Of a stretch of DNA of 64,000 bases, positions 71 to 36,608 are shown piece after piece. The position numbers and the translations under genes are program-made. The first letter of the stretch is position 1. Each line of letters opens with the position of its first letter. The notes below the pieces were generated by a model. The model did not search any database and was not told the origin of the DNA. It was given only the letters and a program-made list of their open reading frames with translations. Source of the stretch: Octopus sinensis (taxonomy: Eukaryota). The stretch is taken from contig NC_042997.1 of the NCBI RefSeq assembly GCF_006345805.1, positions 27,466,001-27,530,000 on the forward strand, in the 5' to 3' direction.

Positions 71-148
71 CATACATATATACACACACACATATATACA
101 TATGAGAGAAAAAATGGGGTACGAACAAAGAGAATAGAAACATATATA

Positions 149-547
149 TCTTCTTTATATATAAAAGTGAAGTTGTGTGTCTGTCTCCTACGATTTAGAT
201 TCCTAACTACTTCCACATTTTGCGGTGCAATTTAACCAAAACCGGGTATCTTATAGTCGTGATTCATATCGAGCCCTTCTGGGTATTAGCGCGCGTCTAC
301 GATGAGTCTACGATTTAAAAAAATATTACCATCATTTTTTTCATTTTAATGCATTTTTTCGCTATTATATAAGGGAAGTAACTCTCTAAAAATGTCTACG
401 ATGAGTCAACGATTTAAAAAAAATTTACCATCATTTTTTCTCCATTTTCAATGCATTTTTTTGCTATTTTTTTCGCTATAACTCTCTAAAAATGCTTATA
501 TAGTTATTTCCTTTACAAACCCGAGCAACGCTGGCCGATACTGCTAG
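149..547 (+). mobile_element. Non-autonomous Helitron-like element
   Basis: Starts TC (TCTTCTTTATATATAAAAG), ends with GC-rich subterminal stretch then CTAG, sits between A148 and T548; absent from the mirrored site near 11430 in the other palindrome arm. Confidence 0.6.
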
Positions 548-659
548 TGAGTTTATAAAGAAACAACTGGCGCGTGTTAAAAAGCGTCACTCGATATGAG
601 GAAGTTTTAATTTTGTCATAGTGGACTACATCGTTTTGGAATCCATACTTTGTTAGTTA

Positions 660-721
660 CCTAATAAATTATTGGGTATGTGGAGAATATAATTTAGTCT
701 GTTTACATAGTCTCTTTTCAT
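660..721 (-). other. Degenerate/alternative first-exon region of an IL-17-like copy whose coding exon is predicted left of the window
   Basis: Mirror of 11256-11316; minus strand reads ATG AAA AGA GAC TAT|gtaaac and ...aatttatTAG|gtaact, homologous to donor of copy B. Confidence 0.5.
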
Positions 722-1209
722 AGTCTCTTATAGTCACAAAATTATATTCATATTTAGGGTATTTGAAAATCTCTGACGAAGAAACAATGGAACGAAATCG
801 TAGTCACAGCCAATTTTAAACTTGACATTTATGTTGCGTATTATTTACTAGATACTGACTATTGAATAAACATTTAATATTTAATATGTGTGTCTGACAA
901 AATATGTGGTGTGCGCGTATTGACCATTATTTATGATTTGTCTTATACGAACACACACACAACCACATGGACGCGCGCATGCATACACACACTCACACAC
1001 ACGCACACACATACGCATATATATGTACAGGGCCATATGCCATGCGCCCCTAACACAGTTCACTTCCACAGTGCATACATTCAATACAATATTACTTCTT
1101 CTCGACAACAGGTCTTGCTGTATTTAACATTAATCCCAAAACGAACCAAACAGAAAAAAGATCCTATCACATGCAAATCAAAGCTGTACAAATTTCTTGA
1201 AGGGATACC

Positions 1210-1445
1210 TATTTCTTTACTACCCACAAGGGATTAAAAGCAGAGAGGGCAAACAAGGACAGACAAACGAATTAAGTCGATTATATCGACCCCAGTGCGT
1301 AACTGGTACTTATTTAATCGACCCCGAAAGGATAAAAGGCAAAGACTACCTCGGCGAAATGTGAACTCAGAACGTAGCGGCAGACGAAATACTGCTAAGC
1401 ATTTCACCCGGCGTGCTAACGTTTCTGCCAGCTCACCGCTTTCAA
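1210..1445 (-). mobile_element. tRNA-derived SINE (family starting GCGGTGAGCTGGCAGAAACGTTAGC)
   Basis: Pol III-like head with GAGTTCA(C)AT B-box-like motif; mirrored copy at 10620-10860, partial copy near 41380-41560. Confidence 0.7.
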
Positions 1446-2028
1446 GTGATACCAGGTAAGCTACATCCTAACTGAATACATACATATTAGTCAACAGCAA
1501 AACCCAATTTACAAAGGGCTTTATATCCAAAATCGTTACTTAAAAATGATTTTATCCGGTAGTGCTTAGAAATTAGATATGGTCTGAGCCAATATTTAGC
1601 TTAATCATATCTAAGTTATCTCAGTTATCTCAGTTATCTTTATTTATTTTTACAAGCACAATTACCATACCAATATACTTTTATATATGCACATATGAGT
1701 GTACGCATTTTTTTTTTTTAGAATACTGTACTGAATCCAAGTTTTTGTACTTCGGTCAGCCAAGGTGAATATGGTTTCAAGCCAGACTCTTACACTTTTC
1801 TGTGATGTGAAAGCAATGATTATATATTGCGTTGCATGTCCTTGTAAAGAGTGAAAGCGTTCAAAACTGTATTATTGATTATCTTTGGCAGATGGTTGCT
1901 CATTTATACTCAACTGCGATTCTAGATAAATTGGAACTGTGATTAACAACACTTTGAGTAGAAAATTCCCATTAGCATCGAAAACTAATCAACAGGTAAG
2001 TGAATATATATACATATACATATACATA

Positions 2029-2108
<80 letters not shown>

Positions 2109-2439
2109 TGTATGTATGTATGTATGTATGTATGTATGTATGCATGCATGTATGTATGTGTATGTATACATATGGCCCCAGTACATATATTTAGTTAATG
2201 TAGGATGAAAATATTATTACAAAGATAAATATAGCAGATAATATCATTGTAGTATATTTACTTACTGTAGATGTCTTCATTGTAATGTTCGAGTTCGATA
2301 ACTTGGCACAAAATGTAGAGTCGGTAGCTGTATACTATTATTATTTTCAACTTCGGTCGAATTGTTCTCTTCTCGATGTGATTGGCGATGTGATTGACAT
2401 TAACCTGTCCCGTGTTTGCTTATATATAGTATAAACACA

Positions 2440-3425
2440 AAGCAGAATTACATTGTGCAACGTATATTCTCATTCAACGATAATTGTAGGGACACAAATG
2501 TGTTCGGAAATGCATTTTTCCGTCAAAGTTGCAGATCCGGCGATAATCTATCACATATTGGAAATAAGAACTTCTTGTCACCGACATAATTCTTCTAAAA
2601 TGTGTTAAAAGGAACAGGACATTGATTTTTTTACAGTTTATTAACCTGCTAACCCACATATCACGGGGGCGGTGTCTGTGGTCAGGATTGATCCACAGGT
2701 ACCGGAAACTAAAACACGTTACACTTCTAAATTTTAATTTAATACCATTGCGTTTGTGTATGATTAGACATATTTTTTTCTACTTTTTAACATTTCAAAT
2801 ATGATATTTGAGTAAGGCGCATTCATATGAGAAGCGTTGCATAAAGAGTGTATAATCTTCAAATTCACAAACTTTTTTCAAAATAACAGGTGGTTAATGA
2901 TATAAAGAATATTTTATATTTGTTTTTAGCTTTTGATATAAAATGAATACAAAGCGGAATTACATTGTCTAAAGCCTGTTATTGTTTTTCAAACAAAGAT
3001 ATTCGGAAATGCATCTATCCGTCGAAGTTGCAAATCCGGCGATAATCTATCACATATTGGAAATAAGAACTTCTTGTGACCGACATATTTCTTGTAATGT
3101 GTGTTAAGAGGAACAGGACATTATAATGCTAACCTGTTGACCCATATATTGCACGGGGGTGGTGTCTGTGGTCATGATTGATCCACAGGTACCGGAAATT
3201 AAAAAAAAACATTACACTTCTAAATTTCAATACTATTGTGCATGTGTATGACTAGTAAAAGCATTTTTTTTATTTTTCATTTCGAATATTATATTTGAAT
3301 AAGGCCCGTTCATATGAGCAGCGTTGCATGAAGAGAATACAATCTTCAAATTCATAAACTTTTTTATAATAACCGGTGATAAATGATATAAAGAATATTT
3401 TATATTTGTTTTTAGCTATTGATAT
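2440..3425. repeat. ~510-bp tandem duplication upstream of the IL-17 unit
   Basis: Repeated GGAAATGCAT...GATAATCTATCACATATTGGAAATAAGAACTTCTTG block at ~2507 and ~3006; same duplication at 8830-9790 (inverted) and 34960-35960. Confidence 0.85.
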
Positions 3426-4399
3426 ACCTGAATGATTAAATTGTGTCCAGTGTTATGTCGTATATGATAATTTTTGTTCTCTTGGGTACCATTCTCCTTC
3501 TTGTGCTAATGTTATTTTTGATGACTTCGGCCATTGTAGATATTCCAGGTGAAATTAAGTTGACGGTGCAAACCGGCAATATGGACATTTCTGATAATTA
3601 AAATGTACGGCATTATCACACAATGTGACACGCTGAATCCGCGCCAACATTTTGCTAAATATAAGCCTGTCTGAGGAATGCTCAAACATTTATATGCTAA
3701 TATAATAAGCAAGTAGTTTAATTCATCGCTCATCAGAGAACCGACGAAGGTGCTTTTTGTTGGGTAACAAAAAATATAATTATAAACACTTCCAGACAGA
3801 ATATTCGTTTCAATATACCCTTTTCAATTATTTCAAGACGAATACAGTAGTATATATTATTATATGGAATGAATTAAATCATCTATCATCTTTTGATGAA
3901 AATTTAACAAAAGTAAAGCAACATATGACATATATACAAATAATGTTGGTGAAGAAGATTCATTCTTACTGCAACATTATTGAATGACATCCAACTAGAT
4001 ATAAAGAACAACTCCCATCTGTAAACTGCAATCTTACAACTAACTCACACACACACACACACACACACTCACGCGCACATACACATACATACACTCATGC
4101 GCGTGCGCACACACATACATTATACTATGGGTAAATTGTCTCCATTTTTCAATTTGAATTTTACGCATTATTTGATTTTGATTTTGTCGACTACACAGGA
4201 TAGTTGTATCAGTTGGACGCTATCTGTGAGAAAATCACCATGACTCAATTCACTCTGCCAGAAAGTTGGAAATGACATTCTGTACTGCTTAGTATTTGCG
4301 TTGGAAGCTCCGATACGAACAGATGGTGAACACGCAGAAAACCGTTAGCTTGCCGTGTTCCCAAAACATGTACCGAGAGTAACAGATATCAAACATCAG

Positions 4400-4975
4400 T
4401 CAACATTACGGTGTTTGGAGTGATCATTAGTGATGATGGCGTTATGCTTTAATATATCATCCCACACGGCCTCAGACTCAAAACAGAAGGCTGCATCAAG
4501 AGCTTGGAGGAATTAGTGCTGCCCTGGATCTAGACGGTGGCTGTTGGAAGAGCCTGTGTCTGGCAAGAGGACTCTGTACTATGTCACACAAACAGTCATG
4601 GCTGTCAGACAATTTCTGCCACCACATCACCCCTAACATCTGGCCACCTAACTCCTCTGACTGCAACACCACTTGATTATTATGTGTGAGGTGCAGTTGA
4701 GCGAGAAACCATCAAAACTCCTTGTAACGCCAAAGATGAACTGAAGGCACGGATTATGGCAGCCCTCAAGAGACCGTTCAAAAGTGTTGCAGAGGATTCC
4801 GAAGTCGCCTGGGGGCCGTGGTTGAATCCAATGGCGATTTTATTGAAAGAATTTACTCTTTAGTATTTTAAGATAGTTTTATTTACTTTTGGTAAATATA
4901 TCTTTTAAAATGAGATGTCAGTGTTATTTTCCTGTTTGCATAATTTAGACGACAATATATTCACTGCACTCTGTT
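4400..4975 (+). mobile_element. Tc1/mariner (maT/DD37D-like) transposase remnant
   Basis: Degenerate translation VFGVIISDDGV...SWLSDNFCHHITPNIWPPNSSDCN.LDYY resembling mariner WPPNSPDxNPLDY motif; mirrored at 7260-7830. Confidence 0.75.
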
Positions 4976-5059
4976 TATATAGATATGCATGTGTGTATGT
5001 ATATGTATAAATATATATGTATGCGTATACTAATTATATACATACATACATACATATAC

Positions 5060-5088
<29 letters not shown>

Positions 5089-5091
<3 letters not shown>

Positions 5092-5772
5092 TTATATATA
5101 TAAAACTGAGAATGTGTTTCTGTCTGTCTGTGTGTTTCCCTAAAACTTGAGAACTACACTACCAATTTCATTCAAATTTTACGCATGCCTTACTTAGGGT
5201 CCGGGGAGTGTCATCAGCAAAAAATTTTAACTTTTTGCCTAGGGTAAGCCCACAGCAATATCATATCTTCTCCACTACGATTCCCTTAAACTTGAGAACT
5301 ACACAACCAATTTCATTCAAATTTTACATATGCCTTACTTAGGGTCCATGTTCAACTTCTTGCTTAGAGCGAGCCCATAGCAATATCATATCTTCTTCAC
5401 TATTTCAGTATTACGTGTTAAAAGTGAAACAAAAATATTTCTCTATTTTATGTCAGATGCTTCCACTTTAACAATAAAAATAATAATAACAATTCATTTA
5501 TATGTAGTAAGTAATAATTAAAATCAAACTAAAGTATAATATAATCCTAACATAACAAAGGTAAAAATAGCAATTGGTATAAAATTGCATCAATGATTTG
5601 AACTTGAATAAGTGGTTTCACATGTATGGGAATAAATTAAAAATAAAATTAGCGTGCAGAAATGGAATAGTTCAGATGGATAATAAATAATTAAATTAAA
5701 GAAAATACTATTGTCTATAAAGTATACAATGTAGAGAAAAAAGAAGAGCTAATTGAGTATTGTTATCACTAG
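5089..5772 (+). mobile_element. Possible Helitron-like insertion, left arm only
   Basis: 5' end TCTTTATATATATAAAA followed by TGTCTG repeats like the 149-547 element; internal tandem duplication; CTAG at 5769-5772; absent from right arm. Confidence 0.4.
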
Positions 5773-5782
5773 CGATATCAAG

Positions 5783-5823
<41 letters not shown>

Positions 5824-5836
<13 letters not shown>

Positions 5837-6409
5837 CGTCGGCTCCAGCTCGTATCCGAGCATTGGGTTCGTCATTTTCTATCTAGTATCCTCGGCTGAT
5901 GTTTGCGCCGAAAGTTACTTTGGATTCCAAGTCGGTGGTGAGAGAGTCGTGGGCAGAATTCGCACAGGATGGTCGATGTGGATCGAGTATGTTGACGCTC
6001 CTTTCTTCTGTATTTTACCGCCTCATTCTTTTGGCTGTTCTGCTCGAAGGAGCTGGCTACATTGTGGATAGCAGTCGTCCAGGCTGTCATATCCATGCCA
6101 CTTTTTTCCCATGAGGATATTTGGATATTAGTTTGAGCCCGGGTCTGTTTGAGCTGTTCTTTAAAACAGAATTTTAGACCACCTCTGGATCTTGTTCCGA
6201 TTGCAAGTGCTCCGTGGAGCATGATCCACGGAAGACGTGAGGGCTCCATACGCTGGACGTGACCTACCCAGCGGAGGCTACGGCTGAAAATGGTGGATTC
6301 GATGTTTAGTTGTGAGGCACGGCGAAGAACATCGTTGTTGGTAATGTGATCTTCCCATCGAATATTGAAGATCTTTCGTAGATTGAATTGCTTGAAGCAT
6401 TCGAGGCGC
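5824..6409 (-). mobile_element. RTE-clade LINE 3' fragment (mirror copy)
   Basis: Minus-strand ORF MEPSRLPWIMLHGALAIGTRSRGG...CEFCPR typical of RTE 3' end; reverse complement of 6446-7020. Confidence 0.85.
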
Positions 6410-7016
6410 CTGTGAGATTTGGATGCTGTATCGCCGTCACTTCAAGCGCCTCGAATGCTTCAAGCAATTCAATCTACGAAAGATCTTCAATATTCGATTG
6501 GAAGATCACATTACCAACAACGATGTTCTTCGCCGTGCCTCACAACCAAACATCGAATCCACCATTTTCAGCCGTAGCCTCCGCTGGGTAGGTCACGTCC
6601 AGCGTATGGAGCCCTCGCGTCTTCCGTGGATCATGCTACACGGAGCACTTGCAATCGGAACAAGATCCAGAGGTGGTCTAAAATTCTGTTTTAAAGAACA
6701 GCTCAAACGGACCCGGGCTCAAACTAATATCTAAACATCCTCATGGGAAAAAAGTGGCATGGATAGATCAGCCTGGAGGACTGCTATCCGGAATGGAACC
6801 AGCTCCTTCGATCAGAACAGACAAAAGACTGATTGGTAAAATACAGGTGACGAAAGGAGCGTCAACATCCTCGACCCACACTGACTATCCTGTGCGAATT
6901 CTGAATTCTGCCCACGACTCTCTCACCCTCGACTTGGACTCCAAAGTCACAAACATCAACCGTGGAGACTGAATAGAAACTGACGAACCTAATACTCGGA
7001 TACGAGCTGGAGCCGA

Positions 7017-7020
<4 letters not shown>
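6410..7020 (+). mobile_element. RTE-clade LINE 3' fragment, 5'-truncated at the P1 centre
   Basis: CEIWMLYRRHFKRLECFKQFNLRKIFNIRLEDHITNNDVLRRA...LRWVGHVQRMEPSRLP is RTE-type RT C-terminal region. Confidence 0.85.
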
Positions 7021-7082
<62 letters not shown>

Positions 7083-7259
7083 TTATGTATATAATTTATG
7101 TATATAATTAGTATACATATATATTTATACATATACATATATACATACATACATACATACATACATACATGCATACATACATACATACATACATACATAC
7201 ATACATACATACATACATACATACATACATACATACATACATACATACACATATATATA

Positions 7260-7830
7260 AACAGAGTCTAAATTACGCAAAAAGGAAAATAACACTGACA
7301 TCTCATTTTAAAAGATATAGTTACCAAAAGTACATAAAATTATCTTAAAATACTAAAGAGTAAATTCTTTCAATAAAATCACCATTGGCTTCAACTACGG
7401 CCTCCAGGCGACTTCGGAATCCTCTGAGACACTTCTGAACGGTCTTTTGTTTAGGTTCGTGAATGCTGCCATAATCCTTGTTTTCAGGTCATTTTTGGCG
7501 TTACAAGGAGTTTTGATGGTCTCTCGCTCAACTGCACCGCCACACATAATAATCAAGGAGGTTGTAGTCTGGGGAGTTAGATGGCCAGATATTAGGAGTG
7601 ATGTGATGGCAGAAATTGTCTGACAGCCATGACTGTTTGTGTGGCATGATAGAGAGTCCTGTTGCCAGACATAGTCTTCCAGCAGCCACCGTCTTGATCC
7701 AGGGCAGCTCTAACCCCTTCAAACACTTGATGCAGGCCTCTGTTTTGAGTCTGAGGCCGTGTGGGATGATATATTGAAGCATAACGCCATCATCACTAAT
7801 GATCACTCCAAACACCGTAATGTTGACTGA
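7260..7830 (-). mobile_element. Tc1/mariner transposase remnant (mirror of 4400-4975)
   Basis: ORF 7528-7815 MFGVIISDDGV...IWPSNSPDYNLLDYYVW. Confidence 0.75.
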
Positions 7831-10111
7831 TGTTTGATATCTGTTACTCTCGATACATGTTTTGGGAACACGGCAAGCTAACGGTTTTCCGTGTGTTCAC
7901 TATCTGTTCGTATCGGAGCTTCCAGCGCGAATACTAAGCAGTACAGAATGTCATTTCCAACTTTATGGCAGAGTGAATTGAGTCATGGTGAGTTTCTCAC
8001 GGATAGCGTCCAACTGATACAACTATCCTGTGTAGTCGACAAAATCAAAATCAAATAATGCGTAAAATTCAAATTGAAAAATGGAGACAATTTACCTATA
8101 GCATACTGTATGTGTGTGCGCGCGTGCGTTTGCGTGTTTGTGTGTGGGTTTGTGCGTGTGTGTGTGTGTGAGTTATTTGTAAGATTGCAGTTTACAGACA
8201 GGAATTGTTCTTTATATCTAGTTAGATGACATTCCATAATGTTGCAATAAGAATAAATCTTCTTCACCAACATTATTCGTATATATGTCATATGATGTTG
8301 TACGTTTGGTAAATTCTCATTAAAAAAATGATAGATGATTTAATTCATTCCATACAATAATATATACTACTGTATTCGTCTTGAAATAATTGAAAAAGGT
8401 ATATTGAAACGAATATTCTGTCTGGAAGTGTTAATACTTATATTTTGTGTTACCGAACCAAAAAGCACCTTCGTCAGTTCTCTGGTGAGCGATGAATTGA
8501 ACTACTTGCTTATTATATTAGCATATAAATGGCTGAGCATTCCTCAGACAGGCTTATATTTAGCAAAATGTTGGCGCGGATTCAGCGTGTCACGTTGTGT
8601 GATAATGCCGTACGTTTTAATTATCAGAAATGTCCATATTGCTGGTTTTGCACCGTCAACTTAATTTCACCTGGAATATCTACAATGGCCGAAGTCATCA
8701 AAAATAACATTAGCACAAGAAGGGGAATTGTACCCAAGAAACAAAAATTATCAAATACGACATAACACTGGACACAATTTAAGCATTCGGGTATATCAAT
8801 AGCTAAAAACAAATATAAAATATTCTTTATATCATTTATCACCAGTTACTATAAAAAAGTTTATGAATTTGAAGATTATATTCTCTTCATGCAACGCTGC
8901 TCATATGAACGGGCCTTATTCAAATATAATATTCGAAATGTGAAATAAAAAAATTGCTTTTTCTAACCATACACATGTACAATAATATTGAAATTAAATT
9001 TAGAAGTGTAATGTTTTTTTTAGATTTTTTTATTTCCGGTACCTGAGGATCAATCATGACCACAGACCCCACCCCCGTGCAATATATGGGTCAACAGGTT
9101 AGCATTATAATATCCTGTTCCTCTTAACACACATTACAAGAAATATGTCGGTCACAAGAAGTTCTTATTTACAATATGTGATAGATTATCGCCGGATTTG
9201 CAACTTCGACGGATAGATGCATTTCCGAATATCTTTGTTTGAAAAACAATAACAGGCTTTAGACAATGTAATTCCGCTTTGTATTCATTTTATATCAATC
9301 GCTAAAAACAAATATAAATTATTCTTTATATCATTTACCACCTGTTATTTTGAAAAAAGTTTGTGAATTTGAAGATTATACACTCTTTATGCAACGCTTC
9401 TCATATGAATGCGCCTTACTCAAATATCATATTTGAAATGTGAAAAAGTAGAAAAAAATCTGTCTAATCATACACAAACACAATGGTATTAAATTAAAAT
9501 TTAGAAGCGTAACGTGTTTTAGTTTCCGGTACCTGTGGATCAATCCTGACCACAGTCACCGCCCCCGTGATATGTGGGTTAGCAGGTTAATAAACTGTAA
9601 AAAAATCAATGTCCTGTTCCTTTTAACACATTTTAGAAGAATTATGTCGGTGACAAGAAGTTCTTATTTCCAATATGTGATAGATTATCGCCGGATCTGC
9701 AACTTTGACGGAAAAGTGCATTTCCGAAGACTTTTGAATCTCTACAATTTTCGTTGAATGACAATATACTTTGCACAATGTAATTCCGCTTTGTATTTAT
9801 ATTATATATAAGCAAACACGGGACAGGTTAATATCATTAAGAACGCCAATCACATCGAGAAGAGAACAATTCGACCGAAGTTGAAAATAATAATAGTATA
9901 CAGCTACCGACTCTACATTTATTGCCAAGTAATCGAACTCGAACATTACAATGAAGACATCTACAGTAAGTAAATATACTACAGTGATATTATCTGCTAT
10001 ATTTATCTTTGTAATAATATTTTCATCCTACATTAACTAAATATATGTACTGGGGCCATATGTATACATACATACATACATGCATGCATGCATACATACG
10101 TACACACATAC

Positions 10112-10144
<33 letters not shown>

Positions 10145-10152
10145 CACACACA

Positions 10153-10235
<83 letters not shown>

Positions 10236-10619
10236 TATGTATATGTATCTGTATATATATTCACTTACCTGTTGATTAGTTTTCGATGCTAATGGGAATT
10301 TTCTACTCAAAGTGTTGTTAATCACAGTTCCAATTTATCTAGAATCGCAGTTGAGTATAAATGAGCAACCATCTGCCAAAAATAATCAATAATACACTTT
10401 CGAACTCTTTCACTCTTTACAAGGACATGCAACGCAAACTATAATCATTGTTTTCACATCACAGAAAAGTGTAAGAGTCTTGGTTTGAAACCATATTCAT
10501 CTTGACTGACCGAATTCATTTTTAAGTAACGATTTTGGATATAAAGCCCTTTGTAAATTGGGTTTTGCTGTTGACTAATATGTATGTATTCAGGTAGGAT
10601 GTAGCTTACCTGGTATCAC

Positions 10620-10860
10620 TTGAAAGCGGCGAGCTTGCAAAATCGTTAGCACGCCAGGTGAAATGCTCAGCAGTATTTTGTCTGCCGCTATGTTCTGAGT
10701 TCCAATTTCGCCGAGGTCGACTTTGCCTTTCATCCTTTCGGGGTCGATTAAGTAAGTCCCAGTTACGCACTGGGGTCGATATAATCGACTTAATCCGTTT
10801 GTCTGTCCTTGTTTGTCCTCTCTGTGTTTAGCCCCTTGTAGGCAGCAAAGAATTAGGTAT
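10620..10860 (+). mobile_element. tRNA-derived SINE (mirror of 1210-1445)
   Basis: Reverse complement of 1210-1445. Confidence 0.7.
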
Positions 10861-11492: not shown

Positions 11493-11585
<93 letters not shown>

Positions 11586-11634
11586 TATATATATATATAT
11601 TATATATTATATATGTATATATATTTATATCTAC

Positions 11635-25180: not shown

Positions 25181-25192
25181 TTATTGTTGTTG

Positions 25193-25258
<66 letters not shown>

Positions 25259-25263
25259 CATCA

Positions 25264-25339
<76 letters not shown>

Positions 25340-25343
<4 letters not shown>

Positions 25344-28140
25344 TAGTTTTATTTTCTATAGCGTGCTTTCACTTCACTACCGAGCGCAGCTCTGTGTGCC
25401 TTAGGTATGTGCTGTGATTTGTTGTGATGCGTAGGATGTGTTCAGTGCCTAGTAGTGCAATTTTCTGTATGTTATATGTGTTTGTAAGTCCTGGTGTTTT
25501 TGTTATGTATTTGTCTGAATATTTTTTTATCATGCCTAATGCACCTACTATGATATGAATTGTTTCTGTTTTTAGATTCCACATTCTGGTTACCTCTATT
25601 TCCAGGTCTTTGTATTTTGAGAGTTTCTCCATTTCTTTTAGAGAAACTTTGTCATCTGCCGGTATTGATACATCAATTAGAAAGCATTTTTTTCTTCATG
25701 ATCTTTGACAACTATATCTGGTCTGTTGGCCTTAATTTCTCTATCTGTGTGTATCGGCATATCCCAGAGTATGGTTGCTTTCTCGTTTTCTGTGACCTTT
25801 TCTGGTGTGTGCCTATACCATCTTTTTTCTGTTGTTATTCCATAATGTTGGCATAGCTTCCAATGTATGTAAGTTCCAACTCTGTCATGTCTGTGAATAT
25901 ATTCCTTCTTAGCCAGGACTGGGCAGCTAGAGATAATATGATTCATTGTTTCTCGTCCATCTCCACATATTCTGCAGTTACTTGTATATTTCTTTTCATT
26001 ACATGTCTTTTGGTAATTTCTGGTGGAGAGGCTTTGCTCTTGTGCGGTAATTAAAAATCCCTCTGTCTCTGCTTTGAGTCCTGAGCTTCTCAACCATTGC
26101 TGGGATTTTTCTTTGTCTATTTCTTTTGCATTTAGTTTAGTCCAGTATTTGCCATGAAGGGGCTTTTCTTGCCATCGTTTTATCATGGTTCGTTGCTGTT
26201 CTATTTTTATTTTGGATTTCATTTGTTTTATAGCTTTTGTTGTTTCTGCATCATCTTCTTCTTCTTCTTCTTCTTCTTCTTCTTCTTCTTCTTCTTCTTC
26301 TTCTTCTTCTTCTTCTTCTTCTTCTTCTTCTTCTTCTTCTTCTTCTTCTTCTTCTTCTTCATATTTATTAGGTGGTATGATTTCTTGTTTGTATTTGTCA
26401 GCTTCCTTAAATACTGAGAACAGTTTTTTGTTTTGCTCGTGTTTTGCCGCTATTTGAATCAGTTTTACTTCCTTCTGAAGTAGATATTTTTGCAGTCTTA
26501 TGGTGGTTATTTTATAGTAGTTTTCCAGCTGTATAAGGCATCTACCACCTTCTATACGTTGTATATATAGTCCTTCTATGTCAGAGCCTGTCATTATTTT
26601 TCTTGTTTTCCTATCTATCTTGGTCAGTTCATTTAGTGTCCAGTTAAGGATATTGTAGCTGTAACTTATAACTGGGACAGCTAAAGTGTTGATACCTATT
26701 ATCTTGTTTTTAGCATTTAGCTCTGTTTTTAGTATTAATCAAACTCGTCTATAATATTCTTTTTCTATTTTCTCTTTCATTTGTGTGTGTTATGTCTTAT
26801 CTAGTTCATGGATTCCTAAGTATTTGTAAGTTTGGCTTTGGTCTAATTCTTTTATTTCATTGGTTTTATCTAGTGTGATGTTGCTACTCTTAACTAGTTT
26901 TCCTCTATTCATGGTTACTTTGGCGCATTTTTCTAATCCAAATTTCATAACTATCTCTTTGGTAAATCCATGAACTGTCTTTAATAGTGTTTCCAGCTGT
27001 TTGTCATTTGCAGCGTATAGTTTTAGGTCATCCATATATAAAAGGTGGCTGATCGTTTTGCCGTAACATTTATATCGCATCCAGTTCTATTTAGTATATC
27101 AGATAGAAGTGACAGTTCCAAGCAGAAAAGGAGTGGAGAGAGCGTGTCTCTCTGGAATATTCCTCTTCTAATGGGGATGTCTTTGGTTTTCATGAGTCCC
27201 TCTTTTGTTTGGAGGTGTAGCACTGTTTGCCATTTATTCATAGAGTGCCCTATGAATTTTATAATTGTTGGTGCTACTTTGTTAATGGCTGGTGTTTCGA
27301 GGATCCATGTGTGGGGGATGCTATCAAACGCCTTTTGCAGTCGATCCAGGCCATACTGAGGCCTTTCTTCTTTCTGTGGCTGTCTTCATGTCTTCAGTTA
27401 CGGCTTTATTAATCATTAGTTGATCTTTACAACCATATGAGCCTTTGCGGCATCCTTTCTGCTCTTCTGGAAACAGGTTGTTTTCGTCCAGGTGCTTGTT
27501 CAACCTTTGCGATATCACTGCAGTAAATGCCTTGTACATTGTAGGGAGACAGGTTATTGGTCTGTAGTTTTCTGGTTTTGCTGTCTCATTTGATTTGGGA
27601 ATTAAGATGGTTTTCCCCTTCGTGAGACATTCAGGCATTGTCTCTGGCTCTGCTAGTATGTTGTTAATGTTTTCAGCCAGCTTTTTGTGCATTCCTGTTA
27701 GATATTTCAACCAGAAGCTGGGGATCTTGTCATGCCCAGGTGCCTAGTCTTTGCAGTGCCTGGGTGACCTCTTCAGTTGTTATGGGGGTCCAAAAATTGC
27801 TCAGATACTGAGTTTGTTGTTTTATTACTCCTTTTTGTTTTTGATTGTTAGTTCGCCGACCATATTCCTTTCCAGAATTCTTCCACTTCTTCTGCCGTTG
27901 GTGCTGCAGTGATTTCTATTTTATTTTTGCCAAGTTCTTGGTAGAACTTTTTGGGGTTGGAGTTGAAATGTTTGTTTTGTTCAAAGAAGCGCTGGCGTTT
28001 CTCGTACCGGCGGATCCTTTGTGCTTTGGCAAGGATATCTTGCTTCAGATTTTCTTTTATCTCAGGTAAATCTTTTTCTGTGATGGTATATTTCGGAGTA
28101 TTTTTGTTTTCTTTTTGTTGCTCAGTAGCGTTGATTGTCT
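25340..28140 (-). mobile_element. R4/Dong-type element, family B
   Basis: RT and RLE ORF pieces (25369-25632, 25677-26594, 26790-27080, 27324-27710); (GAA)n expansion giving poly-E; flanked by (TAA/ATT)n. Confidence 0.9.
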
Positions 28141-28165
28141 AATTTAATAATTGTTATTGTCTAAT

Positions 28166-28218
<53 letters not shown>

Positions 28219-28679
28219 TATTATTATTATTATTATTATTGTTATTACTATTATTATTATTATTATTATTATTATTTTATTATTATTATTATTATTATAT
28301 TATTATTATTATTATTATTATTATTCCTTTGTAGCACACTGTAGGTAAAAATGCACCGAGTCTTTACTTTTCTGTAAAGTCATAACTACCTCACACAGAT
28401 AATATTTGCCTTAACTCATGCGCTGTGCCCAATAAGACTGCTTTTTGCAAGGCATCATTCTTACATGGGATTTCCAGTTGCCTTAAAAAAGTTTTATAGC
28501 TTCAATGGGATTGAGCTCAACGCTCCGATAACCACTGGTATCAATTTTACATTACCCTCTCGCATTCCATACAGTCGTGCCATTTCCTCTTTCATGTCAT
28601 TTGGTATGTTCACATCAATGATCTGACAGCATTTGCCTCCCTTATTTAAATTGACATTATTATTATTATTATTATTCTA

Positions 28680-28831
28680 TGTTTGACTTTTGCTTTATGT
28701 CTGTACAAGTTGGCTCCAAGATTCACCCAGAGACATCAAGAGACAACAGGTTGGAAGTTCACGTTGTTGTTATGCCTAGTCTGCCATATATTTTTTTTGT
28801 TTTTTTTTGTGTTGTACTAGTGAATGTCTAA

Positions 28832-28862
<31 letters not shown>

Positions 28863-29000
28863 AAGTTTGTTTTAAACCTTGGGATTACATAGAGAGTATT
28901 TTGCGTAGGATATGAGCAGTTCCCATGAGCACTATCTTTTGAATTTCTGCCATTTTGGGGTTTCCTGGTATCTGAGTTAGGTAGCAATCATTCCCAGGGC
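28680..29000 (-). mobile_element. Dong family A 3' fragment
   Basis: PGNPKMAEIQKIVLMGTAHILRKILSM plus family A 3' UTR. Confidence 0.8.
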
Positions 29001-29001
29001 A

Positions 29002-29035
<34 letters not shown>

Positions 29036-29061
29036 TTATTATTATTATTATTATTATTATT

Positions 29062-29615
29062 GAGTGAGAGAGCAGTGCAAGCCATCAAAGTGACACTGAT
29101 TTAAAATATACGAAGCCCAGTACAACAATCATGACTACCCGTCTGATAAGGGTACACCAGGCACATGCATCACAACCATATGTGCGTGACATGGTGATCT
29201 CATATCAAGATAAACAACACATGACATTGCAGGTGGGGCCCAGTCAGAATTTTCTTCTGGTCGAGTAGCCCATCCCGCTCAAAAGGTCCCTGAATAAGGG
29301 TTGTTTAAGGATATTGAACGAAACACCCATGTTTCCAGAGGTGAATTATTCAAACCCCAAAGAATCCCTCTCAACACATGACTATGCTGCTCCCCCACTA
29401 CTTCTGCTCGTGATCAGAGCTGCACATATCGTCAGCCGCTAAGGGACATGCCCAACCGGTTAAGGTCAAACAACTGACAAGCAAATCTGTGGTATTGAGC
29501 AGAATATTTGCTGTAGCCCATCTTTTATACCAAGACAAAACAATGTACATGATAACACTTCCAATCAGTAAAGATCAGAAGCCACGAGGGCCACTGCCTG
29601 GTACTGCATCATGGC
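29062..29615. mobile_element. ~555-bp non-coding interspersed element embedded in (ATT)n
   Basis: Begins GAGTGAGAGAGCAGTGCA..CCATCAAAGTGACACTG; copies at 45676-46230 and 62141-62690, each flanked by (ATT)n. Confidence 0.8.
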
Positions 29616-29616
29616 A

Positions 29617-29662
<46 letters not shown>

Positions 29663-29806
29663 TATTATGATTGTCATTGTTATGATATTGTTATATTTTT
29701 GCTTTTGTTGTTGTTTCTGCTGTTATTTTTATCGTTGTCATGTGCGTTTGAGCCCTAGGGCTATAATCACGTTGGCGCACTAATATATTATTGATTTTGA
29801 ATAGAT

Positions 29807-30222
29807 TACTCTTTTACTCTTTTACTTGTTTCAGTCATTTAACTGCGACCATGCTGGGGCACCGCCTTTAGTCGAGTAAATCGACTCCGGGACTTATTCT
29901 TTGTAAGCCCAGTACTTATTCTATCGGTTTCTTTTGCCGAACCGCTATGTCACGGGGACGTAAACACACCAGCAATGCTAGGGGGACAGGCAATGCTAGG
30001 GGGACAAACACAGACACAAACACATACACACACATACATATATACATATGCATATATACGACAGGCTTCTTTCAGTTTCCGTTTACCAAATCCACTCACA
30101 AGGCATTGGTCGGCCCGGAGCTATAGCAGAAGACACTTGCCCAAGATGCCACGCAGTGGGACTGAACCCGGAACCATGTTGTTGGTTAGCAAGCTACTTA
30201 CCACAGAGCCACTCCTGCGCCT
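29807..30222 (-). mobile_element. tRNA-derived SINE family 1
   Basis: Head GGCGCAGGAGTGGC..TGTGG / GGTTCAGTCCC (A/B-box-like), tail (TAAAAGAG)n; absent from mirrored site near 13770. Confidence 0.85.
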
Positions 30223-30834
30223 ATTGCATAGATTTACCGAATGACCGTATCTCAGTATTTCGCCAAATGCAATTGCAATCTCATTTAACCTTCACCTTGC
30301 GTTGCAGAGTATACAGGAGAAAAACACAAACAGTTTCGACTGCATATTTGCATTTTATGAACAATATCTCCTAGACATTCTTCATTGATCCCTAGAGTGA
30401 GTTAAAGTGTGTATGCTTATAAATCTAAGATATAAGATACATAAGAAACAAAGAACAATTCTGCGTTTATAATATAAAATTTATTCAATCTTATGGATCC
30501 AATTACAATTCAACACATTTTTATATGTCTCTTCTTCATTTACTGTATTACAAAATATTATATAAGAAGGAAAAAATAAATTCGAAGTTTCTTATACATA
30601 CACGAAATTATACACTTCGAAAAATTATATGAACGCATTATAATAGACCTTTAATACATTCTATAAATAAGAATTTTATAAAATTCTTAAAACAATAATA
30701 AGCCCTTCCCGGAAGAGGTAATGTATGCACGTACGCATGTAAGCATGTATATATGTGTGTATGCATGTGTGTAATTATATATCTCTAAGTATATATATAT
30801 ATATGTATATGTGTATATGTATATATATATATAT

Positions 30835-31160
30835 GTGAAGGCGCATGGCTCAGTGGTTAGAGCGTCGAGGTTGTGAGCTCGAATCCCGGACCGGGCTGCG
30901 TGTTGTGTTCTTGAGCCAAGCACTTTATTTCACGTTGCTCCAGTTCACTCAGCTGTAGAAATGAGTTGCGACGTCACTGGTGCCAAGCTGTATCGACCTT
31001 TGCCTTTCCCTTGGATAACACTGGTGGCGTGGAGAGGGGAGGCTGGTATGCATGGGCGACTGCTGGTCTTCCATAAAAAAAAAACCTTGCCCGGACTTGT
31101 GTCTAGGAGGGTAACTTTCTAGGTGCAATCCCATGGTCATTCATGACCGAAGGGGTCTTA
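30835..31160 (+). mobile_element. tRNA-derived SINE, right arm only
   Basis: GGCGCATGGCTCAGTGGTTAGAGCG...CTCGAATCCCG head followed by CTTGAGC.AAGCACTTTATTTCAC core. Confidence 0.7.
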
Positions 31161-31572
31161 TTATATATATACGCATTTACACACATATGGATATATATGA
31201 GTGTAAGCATAGGTATTTATGTATGTAGGTATGTATGTGTGAATGTACGCATGCATGTATGCGTGTGTATATATCTGTTACACTCGGGCTCTATGTGCTT
31301 ACGTGAATATATACATTCACGATATAACTCACGATACCCGAATACATTTTAAGTGGACAAAATATTTTATTTCATTTGGCTAATAAATTTTACAAATATA
31401 TTATTATGATCATATTATTACTATATTTATAAAATATGGAATTATATAAAACATGTGTTTTATGCAACATATGTTGCAAGTTATGGTAACCACTTGGTGG
31501 TCGACTTAATCTTTCATAAAATATTGAATAACGTCTGGATTACATATTTATACATCGTTATTCTATCCGTTC

Positions 31573-32100
31573 TTACGACTCGTATTCATCGTTGCTTCCA
31601 CCTTTTCGTGAGTCGGCTTTTCGTGCACATGCACAAGCTGTGGCTACTTCAATCACTTTTGGTTTATACACGTACAGTCCATCAACACATTCATCGGTAC
31701 GTTTAAGGACAGTCATTGGAGTATATACCATCACACATTCGTGGTTGTTGTCTGAATCGAAGCAGCCGTTACAGCGACACACTGCTTCGGTGCGGGATGG
31801 AGGGAAAACTGTTGAATCATGGGTAATATTCAGGTACCAAGGGCAGGTTGAACGTTCACGGATGATATCGCTGGATGAAGGAGACGTTGGGCAAGTTTTA
31901 TCCCCGTCTGTCTGGGAGTTCTGCTTACTTCCGACCGGAGCTCTTTCAACTGGTAGTAAAAAGTTATTGCCAATAGCTGCACGGGACAATGTCTGGTACT
32001 GAACCTTCAGATTGGCTGGTATTTTACACTGGTCTGGAATTGATGCCGATGATACAAGAAAGGCGATGTTGAATAGAAATATGACGATGCTGGAGAGAAC
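31573..32100 (-). CDS. IL17: IL-17-like cytokine copy B, exon 2
   Basis: Same acceptor and frame as copy A; 6 nt differences in 528 nt by manual comparison, one amino acid change (A to V in APAGS/APVGS). Confidence 0.92.
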   Translation of the reverse strand, partial: VLSSIVIFLFNIAFLVSSASIPDQCKIPANLKVQYQTLSRAAIGNNFLLPVERAPVGSKQNSQTDGDKTCPTSPSSSDIIRERSTCPWYLNITHDSTVFPPSRTEAVCRCNGCFDSDNNHECVMVYTPMTVLKRTDECVDGLYVYKPKVIEVATACACARKADSRKGGSNDEYES

Positions 32101-32632
32101 CTGTCAGAGAAAAATATATCTTTGTCAAGGTTACTTTCGATTTGAGACATTTATCAGCTTAATCAAAGAATTCATTTACTTTCGACGCATATATACATTT
32201 ATAACGAAACACTTTACGAAGGTCTAATACAGAAAGTTGAATGAGTGACAAATACGAAAGTGATACGCGGTAATAGAACATCAACAAAATATAATAAAGC
32301 TAAAACCTAAAAACGTCTGTTTGTAGTATATATCGACTGTTTAGTTTTTTTTGTTTTTTGTTTTTAGCAGCGGTCGGTATAAAAAGTATCAGTCAATAAA
32401 AAAAAGAAAGAAAAAGGAAGTATACGTATATACTTATGTATGTACATGTATAGAGAGAAAGAGCAAAAGTGGGGCACGAATGGCGAGAATAAGCACATAC
32501 GTGCGAGCTTATAAATAAACAACTGGAGCGTGTCAAAAAGCGTCACTCGATATGAGGAGGTTACATTTTCTTAAAGGTAGGAGATTACATAGTTTTATAA
32601 TATTTCTTAAGATTCCGTACTTTGTTAGTTAC

Positions 32633-32686
32633 CTGATAAATTATTTTCTGATTATAAAATTGATCGCCAACCGTATATAAAATCAT
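32633..32686 (-). CDS. IL17: IL-17-like copy B, candidate first coding exon (MILYTVGDQFYNQKIIYQ)
   Basis: ATG at 32686, 18 open codons, CAG|gtaact donor in phase 0 matching exon 2; TATA-like ATATAAAG ~160 nt upstream. Confidence 0.6.
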
Positions 32687-33329
32687 TTGTAATGTTCCGG
32701 GGCGCTCGGCTGCTAAGCAAGTTATTCTACAAACGTTTGGCGTGGCTCTCACAGTTGTGAAAGTCCATCGATGTTCTATGATATCAGCTTCGCAAATCCT
32801 TCATAAAATTTTGCAAGATCACATGTTTATGAAGTATTGTTAACTTTATATTTTACTTTACTTCAAGGCTGTAATACTTTTTCATTTCTTGCTGATAAGT
32901 AGCATATTCACTATATTTTTCACAAAGAATTCATAGTCTCATTTATTAAGTTTGCAATTTTCCTAAAAAGCCGGTCACATTATATAAGTTGAAATGCAGT
33001 GGAAGAAATATACTCTGATAGAAACAGCATGCATTAACAAAACGTTTGTCTGAACGTCTTTGGAAGGACACTGATGAGAGTTTCTAATAGTCACACAATT
33101 CATATTCATAATTAGGGTGTTTGTAAAGCATTGATGAATAAGCAATGGAACTGAATATTAATCACAGTCAATTATAGACTCGCATTTCTATTGTGTATTA
33201 TTTACAAGAAGCTGAATACTGAATAAATATTTTAAATTAAATATATGCGTCCGATAGTGTGAGTGGTGTGTGCGCGTTGACCATTTTTATACCTTGTCAT
33301 ACATACACACACACACACCTGCACATATG

Positions 33330-33920
33330 CATGTGTGTCATTATTCAGTTCATTTCAAGATTTCTTGCCCATAGAAAAAGAACCGATTTCTAACCTAGAT
33401 CCAAGATTCCTTCACTGGAATTTCAGCATCAGCAACAGGGTATTTTTGTTTGTATGTATGTTTGAATGTATGTATGTATGTATGTATTTATGTATCTATG
33501 TACGCATACATGTAAGTATGAGCAGATTTATTTATATTATGTATGTATTCTCGTGCACAGAGTTGCATATCTAGACATGCTCATATATATTCAAATGATA
33601 ACTTCTGGTAAGTTTTTCAGATTTTTAGTCCTAGTGACAGATTGGATCGGTAGTCTTCAAATTTGAATTCTCCTTTCTGGATTTGAGAAGCCTAATTTCT
33701 CCAGATTGGTATTTAATCAGTGTGTTACATATCCCAGGGCCCCAATAATTACAGTTATAAACCTGAACTTCTAATCTAGATACAGTAACTGTAGATTTCT
33801 CAATAGTTCAGCACAGGCGATCTCTTTTTCACAGATCTTCAGCTTTATGTTAACATCCGTTGGGCAGCTAATTCCCACAACTGTACACAGTTTCTCTTCT
33901 CTATCCCAAATCATTATATC
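33330..33920 (-). mobile_element. RLE-type non-LTR 3' fragment (same family as 23150-23700)
   Basis: Direct similarity to 23200-23690. Confidence 0.6.
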
Positions 33921-34583
33921 AGATATGTATGCATAAATTCACTACAACACGATCTCGTTTCCTCGACAGGTCTTGCTCTGTTTAACATTATCCCAAAACA
34001 AATGAAAGAGAAATATATCACCTTCAAATGTAAGCTGGACAATTTCTTCAAGGGGTACCAGATAAGCTGCATCATTCTGGATACATATCAGCCAAAGACT
34101 TAATTTTAAAGTGACGTGATACCCCAAATTGTTGCTTAAAAATAACTTAAGCGATTCTATCATGTTGTGCCAATAGGTTAGACATGTACTGGTCCAATGT
34201 TTGACCCAGTCATATCTAAGTTATCTCCGTTACCTTATATGTATATACACGCACACATATTATATCAATATACTTTCATCTATGTGCATGTGAGTGTATG
34301 TGTATTTCGTTAGAATACAGAACTCAAACCAACTAAATGTATTTCGGCCAGTCAATGGGAATACGGTTTGAAAACATCAACGATGCTTTTTGTGCTGCAT
34401 TTCGGTATAAGTATTTAAAACGTTACAAATATTACTATACAATATCGTTGGAAGATGGTTACACATTTATACTCAACTTCGATTCTAGATAAATCACAAG
34501 TGAGATAAAAAAAAAAGAAGCTTTGATTGCAAAATTCCCATTAGCATCGAACACAAACTGCCGAGTATGTAAATTTACAGCAG

Positions 34584-34635
<52 letters not shown>

Positions 34636-36608
34636 TAGATAGATACATACATACATGCATATATACATATATACACATACATGCATATATATATAAATAC
34701 ACTAACATATATATATATATATATATATACTAATATATAAGATTAAAATATAAATATAGGAGATAGTATCGTTAAAGAATATTTACTTACTGTAGATGTC
34801 TTCATTGTGATACTGGACTTTTTGGCACAAAATGTAGAGTCGGTAGCTGTATACTATTATTATTTTCAACTTAGGCCGAATTGTTCTCTTCTCGATGTGA
34901 TTGGCGTTCTTAATGATATTAACCTGTCCCGTGTTTGCTTATATATAATATGAATACAAAACGGAATTAAATTGTCTAAAGCTTGTTATTGTTTTTCAAA
35001 GAAAATAGTAGGAACTCTATTTTCGGAAAATAAGATTTTCGGAAATGCATCTATCCGTCGAAGTTGCAAATCCGGCGATAATCTATCACATATTGGAAAT
35101 AAGAACTTCTTGTGACCGACATATTTCTTGTAAAGTGTGTTAAGAGGAACAGGACATTATAATGCTAACCTGTTGACCCATATATTGCACGGGGGCGTTA
35201 CCTGTGGTCAGGATTGATCCACAGGTACCGGAAACTAAAACAGTTTACACTTCTAAATTTTAATTTAATACCATTGTGCTTGTGTATGATTAGACAAACT
35301 TTTTTTCTTCATTTTCGCATTTCAAATATAATATTTGTGTAATGCGCATTCATATGAGAAGCGTTGCATAAAGAGTATATAATCCTCAAATTCACAAACT
35401 TTTTTCAAAATAACAGGTGGTAAATGATATAAAGAATAATTTATATTTGTGTTTAGCTTTTGATATAAAATTAATACAAAGCGGAATTACATTGTCTAAA
35501 GCCTGTTATTGTTTTTCCAAGTAAATAGTAGGAACTCAAAGATATACGGAAATGCATCTATCCGTCGAAGTTGCAAATCCGGCGATAATCTATCACATAT
35601 TGGAAATAAGAACTTCTTGTGACCGACATATTTCTTGTAAAGTGTGTTAAGAGGAACAGGACATTAAAATGGTAGCCTGTTAACCCACATAGCACAGGAG
35701 CGGTATCTATGATCATGATCGATGAACAGGTACCGGAAATTTACAAAAAACATTACACTTCTAAATTTTATTTTAATACTACTCTGCTTGTGTATGACAA
35801 AACAATTTTTTTTTTGTTTCTCATTTCGAATATTATATTTGAATGTTTGTATGAGAAGCGTTGCATAAAGACTATAAAATCTTCAAATTCACAAGCATTT
35901 TCAAAATATCCAGTGATAAATGATATAAAAGATATGCTATATTTGTTTTTAGCTATTGATATATCTGACTGCTTAAATTGGGTCCAGTGTTATGTGGTAT
36001 TTGATAATTTTTGTTCTCTTTTGTATGATTCTCCTTCTTGTGCTAATGTTATTGTTCATGACTTTGGCCATTGTAGATATTCCAGGTGAAATTAAGATGA
36101 CGGTACAAAACCGGCAGGTTGGATATTTTTGACAATTATGCTGAATCCGAAGAAAATTTCTTTAAAAACAAGTGTGTCTGAGGTATGCTCAGCCATTTAT
36201 ATGCTAATATAAAAACATGTAGTTCAATTCATCGCTCATCAGTGAATCGACGAAGGTGCTTTTACTTAGGTAAAACAAAATATAAGTTTAAAAATTTGCT
36301 GATAAGATGATATTCGTTTCACTTTAGCTTTTTCAATTATTTCAGGAGAAATAAAGTGGTATATATTATCAAATGGAATGAATTAAATATTCTATCATTC
36401 ATTGATTGTTATCTACCAAATGTACATCATCAAATGATATATGCGCGAATAATGTTGGTGGACAATATTCATTCTCACAACATTATTGAGGACATCCAAC
36501 TGGATATGAGAAACGATACCTATCTGCAAACTGCAATATTACAAATAAAAAAAAAATATATATATATATATGAGTGTGTGCGCGTGTGTGTATATATATA
36601 CATACACA

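Follow-up and report, generated by a model that had tools for sequence, protein, structure and literature searches.

The stretch of DNA considered here (the window) is the 64-kb interval C1:27,466,001-27,530,000 of a chromosome-scale scaffold of Octopus sinensis, and it carries interleukin 17 (IL-17)-like genes arranged around two palindromes. The view was widened by 30 kb leftward and 10 kb rightward, and coordinates are given in window numbering, with negative values lying off the left edge. Two open reading frames (ORFs), 12165-12695 on the plus strand and 31573-32103 on the minus strand, match the Pfam family PF06083 (E 1.3e-16, 61.2 bits against a cut-off of 24) over the full profile, positions 1-81, which places them in the IL-17 cystine-knot family; their NCBI name is interleukin 17-like protein of Octopus sinensis. 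Three IL-17-like units are oriented minus (U1), plus (U2), and minus (U3) and are joined head-to-head at both palindrome centres, and the NCBI annotation holds three separate genes, XP_029645913 (U1), XP_029646807 (U2), and XP_036365846 (U3). A preliminary description of the same sequence had placed three IL-17 units within 100-36560; the alternating order stands, but only two of the coding exons are in that range, and the third lies off the left edge. The units and their exons are as follows.

About -2830 to 6409 (1..6409 in the window), minus strand: U1, an older tandem paralog, ortholog of unit A of Octopus bimaculoides.
6410..22015 (15,606 nt), plus strand: U2, a derived inverted chimeric unit inserted into a long interspersed nuclear element (LINE).
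22021..36548, minus strand: U3, an older tandem paralog, with its b-left portion orthologous to O. bimaculoides unit C/B.
C1:27464375-27464902 (window -1625..-1098), minus strand: IL-17 exon 2 of U1, off the left edge, 94% amino acid identity.
12165-12695, plus strand: IL-17 exon 2 of U2 (XP_029646807.1), a fine mosaic of U3-like, U1-like, and U3-like stretches.
31573-32103, minus strand: IL-17 exon 2 of U3 (XP_036365846.1).
2266-2280, minus strand: exon 1 (MKTST) of U1 (XP_029645913.1).
9951-9965, plus strand: exon 1 (MKTST) of U2, in the U1-derived part.
34791-34805, minus strand: exon 1 (MKTST) of U3.

Since exon 1 is conserved at mirrored positions in all three units, these are three structurally complete two-exon genes; the O. 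bimaculoides ortholog has the N-terminus MKTSR where the O. sinensis units have MKTST. The window part of U1 consists of the intron and promoter flank called b-left, a transposon-derived stretch, and a LINE 3' piece.

The palindrome centres were sought by ungapped and gapped self-comparison, and both were found where they had been described, with spacers of 36 nt at 6410-6445 and 5 nt at 22016-22020. In self-comparison, the arms of centre 1 (6023-6412 and 6443-6832) are 95% complementary and about 30-36 nt apart, while those of centre 2 (21726-22015 and 22021-22310) are 88% complementary and 5 nt apart. Gapped alignment shows collinear mirroring far beyond the centres rather than scattered repeat matches: the first palindrome (P1) spans -2830 to 13851 with its centre at about 6427, the second (P2) spans 8173 to 36548 with its centre at about 22018, and the mirroring is broken only by arm-specific transposon insertions and microsatellites. 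No other short-spacer palindrome, low-complexity sequence apart, was found in the 64-kb window. The third unit had been said to stop matching at about 36560, and its homology does end at 36548, but this is the end of an older paralogy and not a truncated fold-back arm.

The three units do not share all of their sequence, and their common and private parts can be divided as follows (segments a to c in U2 coordinates).

6445-8173: segment a, common to U1 and U2 only.
8173-13851: segment b, in all three units, with the promoter region, exon 1, the intron, and IL-17 exon 2.
13851-22015: segment c, common to U2 and U3 only, transposon-rich.
12485..12641: main interval of the switch from U1 to U3 sequence, within IL-17 exon 2, with zero informative sites inside.

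U2 is a younger inverted chimera, with its left part from U1 and its right part from U3. In a three-way alignment of segment b, 816 of the 1245 informative sites pair U1 with U2, predominantly left of exon 2 (to about 12072), and 285 pair U2 with U3, predominantly to its right. Up to about 12072 the identity between U1 and U2 is 91-98%, with U3 at 74-93%; from 12641 on, U2 and U3 are 84-99% identical and U1 is the outlier at about 77%. A short U3-like patch also occurs in U2 at 12089-12279. The left 6 kb of U2 is a reverse copy of the DNA right of U1 exon 2 (LINE 3' piece, transposon fragment, promoter, exon 1, intron, and start of exon 2), and its right part reproduces in reverse the DNA left of U3 exon 2 (LINE 5' piece, spacer, 3' flank, and end of exon 2). 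The halves meet inside exon 2, where the likeness of U1 and U3 is greatest; U1 and U3 themselves are in direct orientation and about 19-30% diverged on both sides of it. The U2 gene has its promoter and exon 1 from U1 and its C-terminal tail from U3.

Distances over b-left separate the older copies from the younger one. U1 and U2 are about 0.05 apart (Kimura two-parameter distance, K2P, of 0.055 over 2135 columns), U1 and U2 are 0.15-0.17 from O. bimaculoides unit A (0.146 for U1), U3 is at a K2P of 0.118 from unit C, U1 is 0.188 from U3, and units A and C are 0.242 apart; the four-point condition clearly holds. The tandem duplication that separated U1 from U3 therefore predates the split of O. 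sinensis and O. bimaculoides, and the left part of U2 is a recent copy of U1. The locus had been described as an inverted triplication of one unit, and a true inverted triplication, arising by origin-dependent inverted-repeat amplification (ODIRA) or as a duplication-inverted triplication-duplication (DUP-TRP/INV-DUP) and followed by divergence and gene conversion, would give both the minus, plus, minus order and two junctions at short inverted repeats. It is nevertheless very improbable, as U1 and U3 each have an O. bimaculoides ortholog that is closer than they are to one another, segment a is missing from U3 and segment c from U1, and the inverted repeats are 467 nt apart with the copied DNA outside rather than between them. 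Only U2 is new, and the net gain at the locus is one gene copy, not two.

The orthologous locus, which the preliminary description had proposed to examine in another octopus, was compared in 127 kb of O. bimaculoides CM046601.1, where the site is undisturbed. The arrays are collinear gene for gene, with the order plus, minus, plus (partial), plus (neighbour), minus, minus, minus in O. bimaculoides and plus, minus, plus (partial), plus (neighbour), minus, plus, minus in O. sinensis, and orthologous non-coding identity is about 85-88%. Since O. bimaculoides has a minus-strand gene at the place of U2 in this collinear array, minus is the ancestral orientation. The only proteins annotated in O. 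vulgaris fall 76 kb away or in the other cluster.

Both centres fall within one ancestral LINE, and the pieces that adjoin them belong to one LINE family. The piece at centre 2 is reverse-transcriptase coding sequence that reads toward the centre, and the piece at centre 1 is the LINE C-terminal region, reading away; the genome holds at least eight further, intact copies of the LINE, and in these both pieces follow one another collinearly on one strand, about 420-480 nt apart. Without U2, a single minus-strand LINE that lacks its middle would separate U1 from U3. The parts that meet at the junctions are listed here.

5785..6409, minus strand: LINE 3' piece on the U1 side, ending ...GAGGCGC.
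6410..6445, plus strand: centre 1 spacer of 36 nt, LINE coding sequence that continues into the U2 arm, in the reverse of the ancestral (O. bimaculoides) orientation.
21664..22015, plus strand: LINE 5' (reverse-transcriptase) piece on the U2 side, ending ...GCGCTATC.
22016..22020, no strand assigned: centre 2 loop of 5 nt, CAAGT, in the ancestral orientation and contiguous with U3.
22021 to about 23129, minus strand: LINE 5' piece on the U3 side, the start of U3.

In O. bimaculoides, the LINE after unit A lies on the strand of the U1 and U3 pieces and is uninterrupted across both breakpoints, reading ...GAGGCGC / TTCAAATGACGG...CTCGCAG / GCGTAG ... (467 nt) ... CCAATT / GATAGCACATG..., with slashes between the parts. 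Relative to this LINE, the U1 arm ends in GGCGC, U2 starts with the next 36 nt, inverted, and U3 starts with the loop CAAGT followed by GATAG... The end of the U1 arm maps to O. bimaculoides 94341-94407, the 36-nt spacer to 94408-94443, and the start of the U3 arm to 94911 onward, on the strands expected for U1 and U3 and inverted for U2. The 467 nt of LINE between the breakpoints are present in O. bimaculoides and missing from O. sinensis; as lost sequence cannot be regenerated, O. bimaculoides has the ancestral state and U2 is a derived insertion. The ancestral state is two IL-17-like genes (U1 and U3) in tandem on the minus strand, with a transposon-rich spacer that contains one LINE. Breakage-fusion-bridge, also suggested earlier, does not agree with flanks that are both collinear with O. 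bimaculoides and a loss of only 467 nt.

Centre 2 coincides with an inverted repeat of the LINE consensus, CGCTATC-GCTTG-GATAGCG, of which the 5-nt spacer is the natural loop; its stem is 5-7 bp, and the O. bimaculoides ortholog keeps 5/6 stem pairs. Centre 1 has a 3-nt CGC/GCG microhomology at 6409/6410 (a 3-4-nt stem, GCGC...36 nt...GCG) and a 36-nt loop. Inverted repeats of such size, low-complexity sequence apart, are found at only 1-2.5% of positions in these sequences. Both loops are contiguous with the right-hand arm on the plus strand, which fits, weakly, one processive path of three switches with the strand switch "ahead of the loop." Spacer ownership was also considered as the decider of the template arm and was dropped as decisive, because recombination between arms can flip spacers. 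The junctions are of the template-switch type first proposed for them: genuine head-to-head fold-backs at short inverted repeats or microhomology, which added an IL-17 copy in the germline lineage of O. sinensis.

U2 probably arose by germline fold-back template switching, similar to ODIRA and to microhomology-mediated break-induced replication (MMBIR), combined with a homologous join in the exon, in one step or two. Replication or repair synthesis would have doubled back by inter-strand template switch at two short LINE inverted repeats, one with a 5-7-bp stem and a 5-nt loop and the other with a 3-4-nt stem and a 36-nt loop, and the two inverted copies would have been bridged by a homology-driven switch or by annealing in the paralogous exons. 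Working between two paralogs, ODIRA/MMBIR-type chemistry would thereby have placed the 15.6-kb U2, inverted, inside the LINE, with 467 nt of LINE lost. The same final sequence, chimeric U2 included, could also be reached if unequal crossing-over between exon 2 of U3 and that of U1 first produced a direct hybrid triple in which the LINE spacer was present twice, and the middle unit was then flipped by breaks or template switches that fell at one and the same point of each LINE copy. Unequal crossing-over is the usual growth route of such arrays (PMC8353272), and O. bimaculoides has three direct copies here; however, the third of these is a duplicate of B/C and not a U1/U3 hybrid, and the region holds one copy of the LINE. 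Four DNA ends would have to be matched within 5 and 36 nt, with the same loss of about 467 nt from both LINE copies, end-joining does not explain why centre 2 falls on a natural inverted repeat, and more steps are needed than for direct fold-back, so that this route is unlikely.

A further rival reading is that the palindromes were produced by fold-back chimeric long reads or a mis-oriented contig. Short-spacer palindromes are a known product of missed-adapter long reads, and the structure was judged here from the assembled sequence. The arms, however, differ mostly by substitutions (about 5:1 over gap openings, with transitions about equal to transversions); they are 6-11% diverged right next to the centres, 3-12% overall, and 5-12% outside exon 2 and a 2.4-kb LINE block. 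Diverged arms are not what a fold-back chimeric read yields, as its arms would be nearly identical. Each arm also has private LINE or SINE (short interspersed nuclear element) insertions, such as a 4-kb LINE only in U2, and no Ns occur in the 104 kb examined. A SMRTbell adapter at centre 1 was ruled out, the spacer being LINE coding sequence. With the centres on a natural LINE inverted repeat, the missing middle of that LINE present in the sister species, and three distinct genes in the NCBI annotation, an assembly artefact is extremely improbable.

The age of the structure can be judged from divergence at non-CpG sites, which is 0.050-0.072 for the P1 inner arms (5.5 kb), 0.090-0.119 for the P2 inner arms, and 0.030 for a 2.4-kb block of a LINE called LINE-B within P2. 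Interspecies ortholog divergence is 0.15-0.27, and arm divergence below these values places the event or events after the species split. P1 arms had been noted to look younger than P2 arms, and they do; CpG decay as the cause was ruled out by the same two-fold difference at non-CpG sites. When P1 and P2 are normalised by local interspecies divergence, the ratios are mixed (0.37, 0.45, and 0.8). The low LINE-B value points to at least one multi-kilobase arm-to-arm conversion.

Two histories fit these values: two sequential fold-backs, P2 first and then P1, or one event of three switches that was followed by large arm-to-arm conversions. Breakpoints only 467 nt apart favour one event, and the two-fold difference in divergence favours two. 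A single germline event, in which a fork stalled or a break occurred in the LINE, both sides folded back at mini-hairpins, and the inverted nascent copies annealed in the paralogous exon, is a tentative suggestion and somewhat doubtful.

Several points weigh against fold-back switching as it is proposed here. The two-fold gap between P1 and P2, together with the LINE-B value of 0.030, means that a single event needs later large conversion tracts, while two events leave it unexplained why the second breakpoint lies so close (within 467 nt) to the other junction of the first event. The imperfect centre 2 repeat of O. bimaculoides implies an ancestral stem that may have been 5-7 bp and not certainly 7. 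Spacer ownership is weak evidence, as arm-to-arm recombination can flip spacer orientation. The O. bimaculoides assembly has 18% gaps in the region, one of them just past the LINE spacer, and both junctions were read from the sequence of one assembly.

Exon 2 is far more uniform than its flanks, synonymous sites included. U1 and U2 are identical over exon 2 nt 116-476 and U2 and U3 over nt 322-528, and between U1 and U3 the synonymous divergence (dS) of exon 2 is 0.08, where the flanks reach about 0.2 or more. The preliminary description had attributed such uniformity to the palindromic arms, as on the Y chromosome. However, the three direct-repeat copies of O. bimaculoides are homogenised equally, with an exon-region K of 0.05-0.065 within the species, flanks at 0.24, and an exon-region K of 0.11-0.15 between species; a palindrome is therefore not needed, and, outside exon 2 and the 2.4-kb LINE block, the arms have diverged as given above. 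The uniformity of exon 2 reflects ordinary interlocus gene conversion in a tandem family and not an effect of the palindrome. The C-terminal tail, exon 2 nt 477-525 (window 12641-12689 and its mirrors), is ADTRNVDGDDDYES in U1 and ADSRKGGSNDEYES in U2 and U3. The two forms differ by 11 changes in 49 nt, although U1 and U2 do not differ at all over the 361 nt that directly precede them. This is a sharp conversion-tract edge, and the difference in the tail is possibly a functional divergence.

Growth of the array by fold-back, as once suggested, is not supported: one copy arose in this way among about 17 in the cluster, which are mostly in one orientation, and the junction signature has a single occurrence in the 2.7-Gb genome. 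That single occurrence also rules out the LINE repeat as a recurrent fold-back hotspot. No short-spacer fold-backs were found in the 127-kb O. bimaculoides array (18% gaps), and an older minus-strand copy at 27.413 Mb is common to O. sinensis and O. bimaculoides. About 59 IL-17-domain matches occur genome-wide, and several of them carry single in-frame TGA stops. One chromosome has two clusters of these matches (27.3-27.65 Mb and 134.1-134.9 Mb), and the others lie on unplaced contigs. An unplaced contig of 38.9 kb, C12174, has a second minus, plus, minus IL-17 trio with spacings of 10.6 and 16.3 kb, and contig C10594 was noted alongside it. The copies on C12174 are these.

2770-3297, minus strand: IL-17 copy.
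13408-13935, plus strand: IL-17 copy.
29705-30223, minus strand: IL-17 copy.

This trio could be another fold-back structure or a haplotig; it was compared by ±1.5-kb flanks only and is without a clear chimeric pattern. A look-up for C12174, and for ORFs across or next to both centres, returned nothing on record.

Transposons and other repeats account for much of the remaining sequence, and decayed or partial gene copies are also present. The features outside the main argument are listed here.

14021..18013 (about 4 kb), plus strand: LINE with long, nearly open reverse-transcriptase ORFs, in U2 only (RVT_1 at E 6.8e-28, and zf-RVT).
18013..20383, plus strand: LINE-B in the U2 arm, with its mirror at 25203-27631 on the minus strand and a divergence of 0.03.
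26136-26457 (minus strand, within the LINE-B ORF), 25118-25417, and 20177-20467: coding-frame microsatellites.
2412-2940 and 2926-3426, with mirrors at 8792-9295 and 9291-9819 and at 34931-35467 and 35449-35963: tandem duplication of about 510 bp.
29806-30235, 37934-38351, 43945-44351, 53891-54302, 58853-59273, and 63611-64000: copies of a repeat of about 420 nt.
O. bimaculoides merged locus 88728-89648 and 92650-91728: inverted partial copy, located in the spacer that separates unit A from the LINE.

Where U2 has the LINE at 14021-18013, the U3 arm holds a different 2.6 kb, and the U2-only LINE appears to be a later insertion with deletion or replacement. Only about 370 nt of the LINE-B 3' end is found at the orthologous place in O. 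bimaculoides. Coding-frame microsatellites account for most arm length differences; these include a poly-Glu run of about 40 residues within the LINE-B ORF, in the U3 arm only, as well as poly-Tyr/Ile. A "mariner-like" label for 7395-7896 and 21173-21673 had been given by eye only, was unconfirmed by Pfam, and was set aside. The duplication of about 510 bp, with about 79-83% identity between its two repeats, is in the promoter and intron flank of every unit and therefore predates the duplication of U1 and U3. The repeat of about 420 nt, possibly SINE-like, has at least six copies in both orientations with 84-94% identity, and one copy adjoins the end of U3 homology at 30223 and is missing from U2 there.

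A decayed fourth IL-17 exon 2 copy, with in-frame stops and a frame break, lies at 43318-43843 on the plus strand; it has about 51-58% amino acid identity to U2, and its DNA most resembles the left-neighbour gene type (72%). At -4402..-3716 there is an orphan copy of the exon-1 region that adjoins the duplication of about 510 bp, and it lacks an intact exon 1. O. bimaculoides has its own inverted partial copy of the exon-1-bearing flank, with 85% identity and a 2-kb spacer; the orthologous interval has thus undergone an inverted duplication independently there.

The chemistry of fold-back switching has been described chiefly in yeast selection experiments, human disease alleles, and cancer. 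The locus suggests that replication-type fold-back switching at short inverted repeats also makes fixed, intact gene copies in the animal germline, and it does so at base-pair resolution, with the empty site kept in a sister species. A transposon would be the supplier of the hairpin sites, and the product recombines the promoter and exon 1 of one paralog with the C-terminal tail of another. If the single-event origin is true, then a double fold-back, bridged by homology, would have made three genes out of two direct paralogs, the middle one inverted and chimeric. No description of this as a mode of gene-family growth was found in the literature, and molluscan IL-17 expansions have been described only as tandem repeats (PMC8353272). 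The locus is also a natural test case for the survival of 5-10 kb short-spacer palindromes, which have persisted here long enough for 5-12% divergence.

Among known systems, ODIRA has junctions at interrupted repeats of 2-14 bp with arms less than 100 bp apart (PMC10766183, Martin et al. 2024). The octopus locus is similar in its inverted middle copy and in having short interrupted repeats of this kind at both centres, with loops of 5 nt and 36 nt, and a leading-to-lagging strand template switch accounts for the loop orientation at both. It differs in that one chimeric copy was gained, rather than three copies of one segment arising together, and in that the duplicated DNA lies outside repeats 467 nt apart, a geometry like that of converging and not diverging forks; a third, homology-driven switch in exon 2 is also required here. 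A replication origin within the amplified segment is a further feature of ODIRA. Further comparison can be made with MMBIR and fork stalling and template switching (FoSTeS) and with DUP-TRP/INV-DUP (Carvalho et al. 2011; Grochowski et al. 2024, PMC11293582). As in MMBIR/FoSTeS, the switches are iterative, one by paralog homology and the others by microhomology, and the product has an inverted segment; of the three junctions, two have microhomology (3 nt and 5-7 nt) and the third is a homologous switch within an exon of 97% identity, with no large loss. In DUP-TRP/INV-DUP, by contrast, duplicated segments flank the triplicated one, which is not so at the octopus locus, and the homologous switch uses pre-existing inverted low-copy repeats, whereas here it is between direct paralogs after fold-back; the octopus structure is also fixed in the species and is not a de novo pathogenic variant.

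Systems in which palindromes form next to a break yield large terminal palindromes or dicentrics. The octopus locus is like them in the 5-7-bp repeat with a 5-nt loop at centre 2, which fits snap-back priming from the U3-side end; however, its inverted copy is interstitial and reaches only 5-6 kb to each side, where a second fold-back together with a homologous join closes it. Such palindromes, from breaks beside short inverted repeats, are said to occur in Tetrahymena ribosomal DNA, in the Chinese hamster ovary (CHO) cells of Tanaka et al. 2002, and in the yeast of Rattray et al. 2005. The octopus palindromes also resemble the ampliconic palindromes of primate sex chromosomes in carrying gene copies in inverted arms and in their low-divergence patches (exon 2, and LINE-B at 0.03), but most of their arm length is 5-12% diverged, and their spacers are 5 and 36 nt where those of the primate palindromes are kilobases. 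The primate palindromes reportedly undergo arm-to-arm gene conversion that keeps identity above 99.9%, in the account of Rozen et al. 2003. Taken with these systems, the octopus event is an unusual form of known template-switch rearrangements and not a new kind of system.

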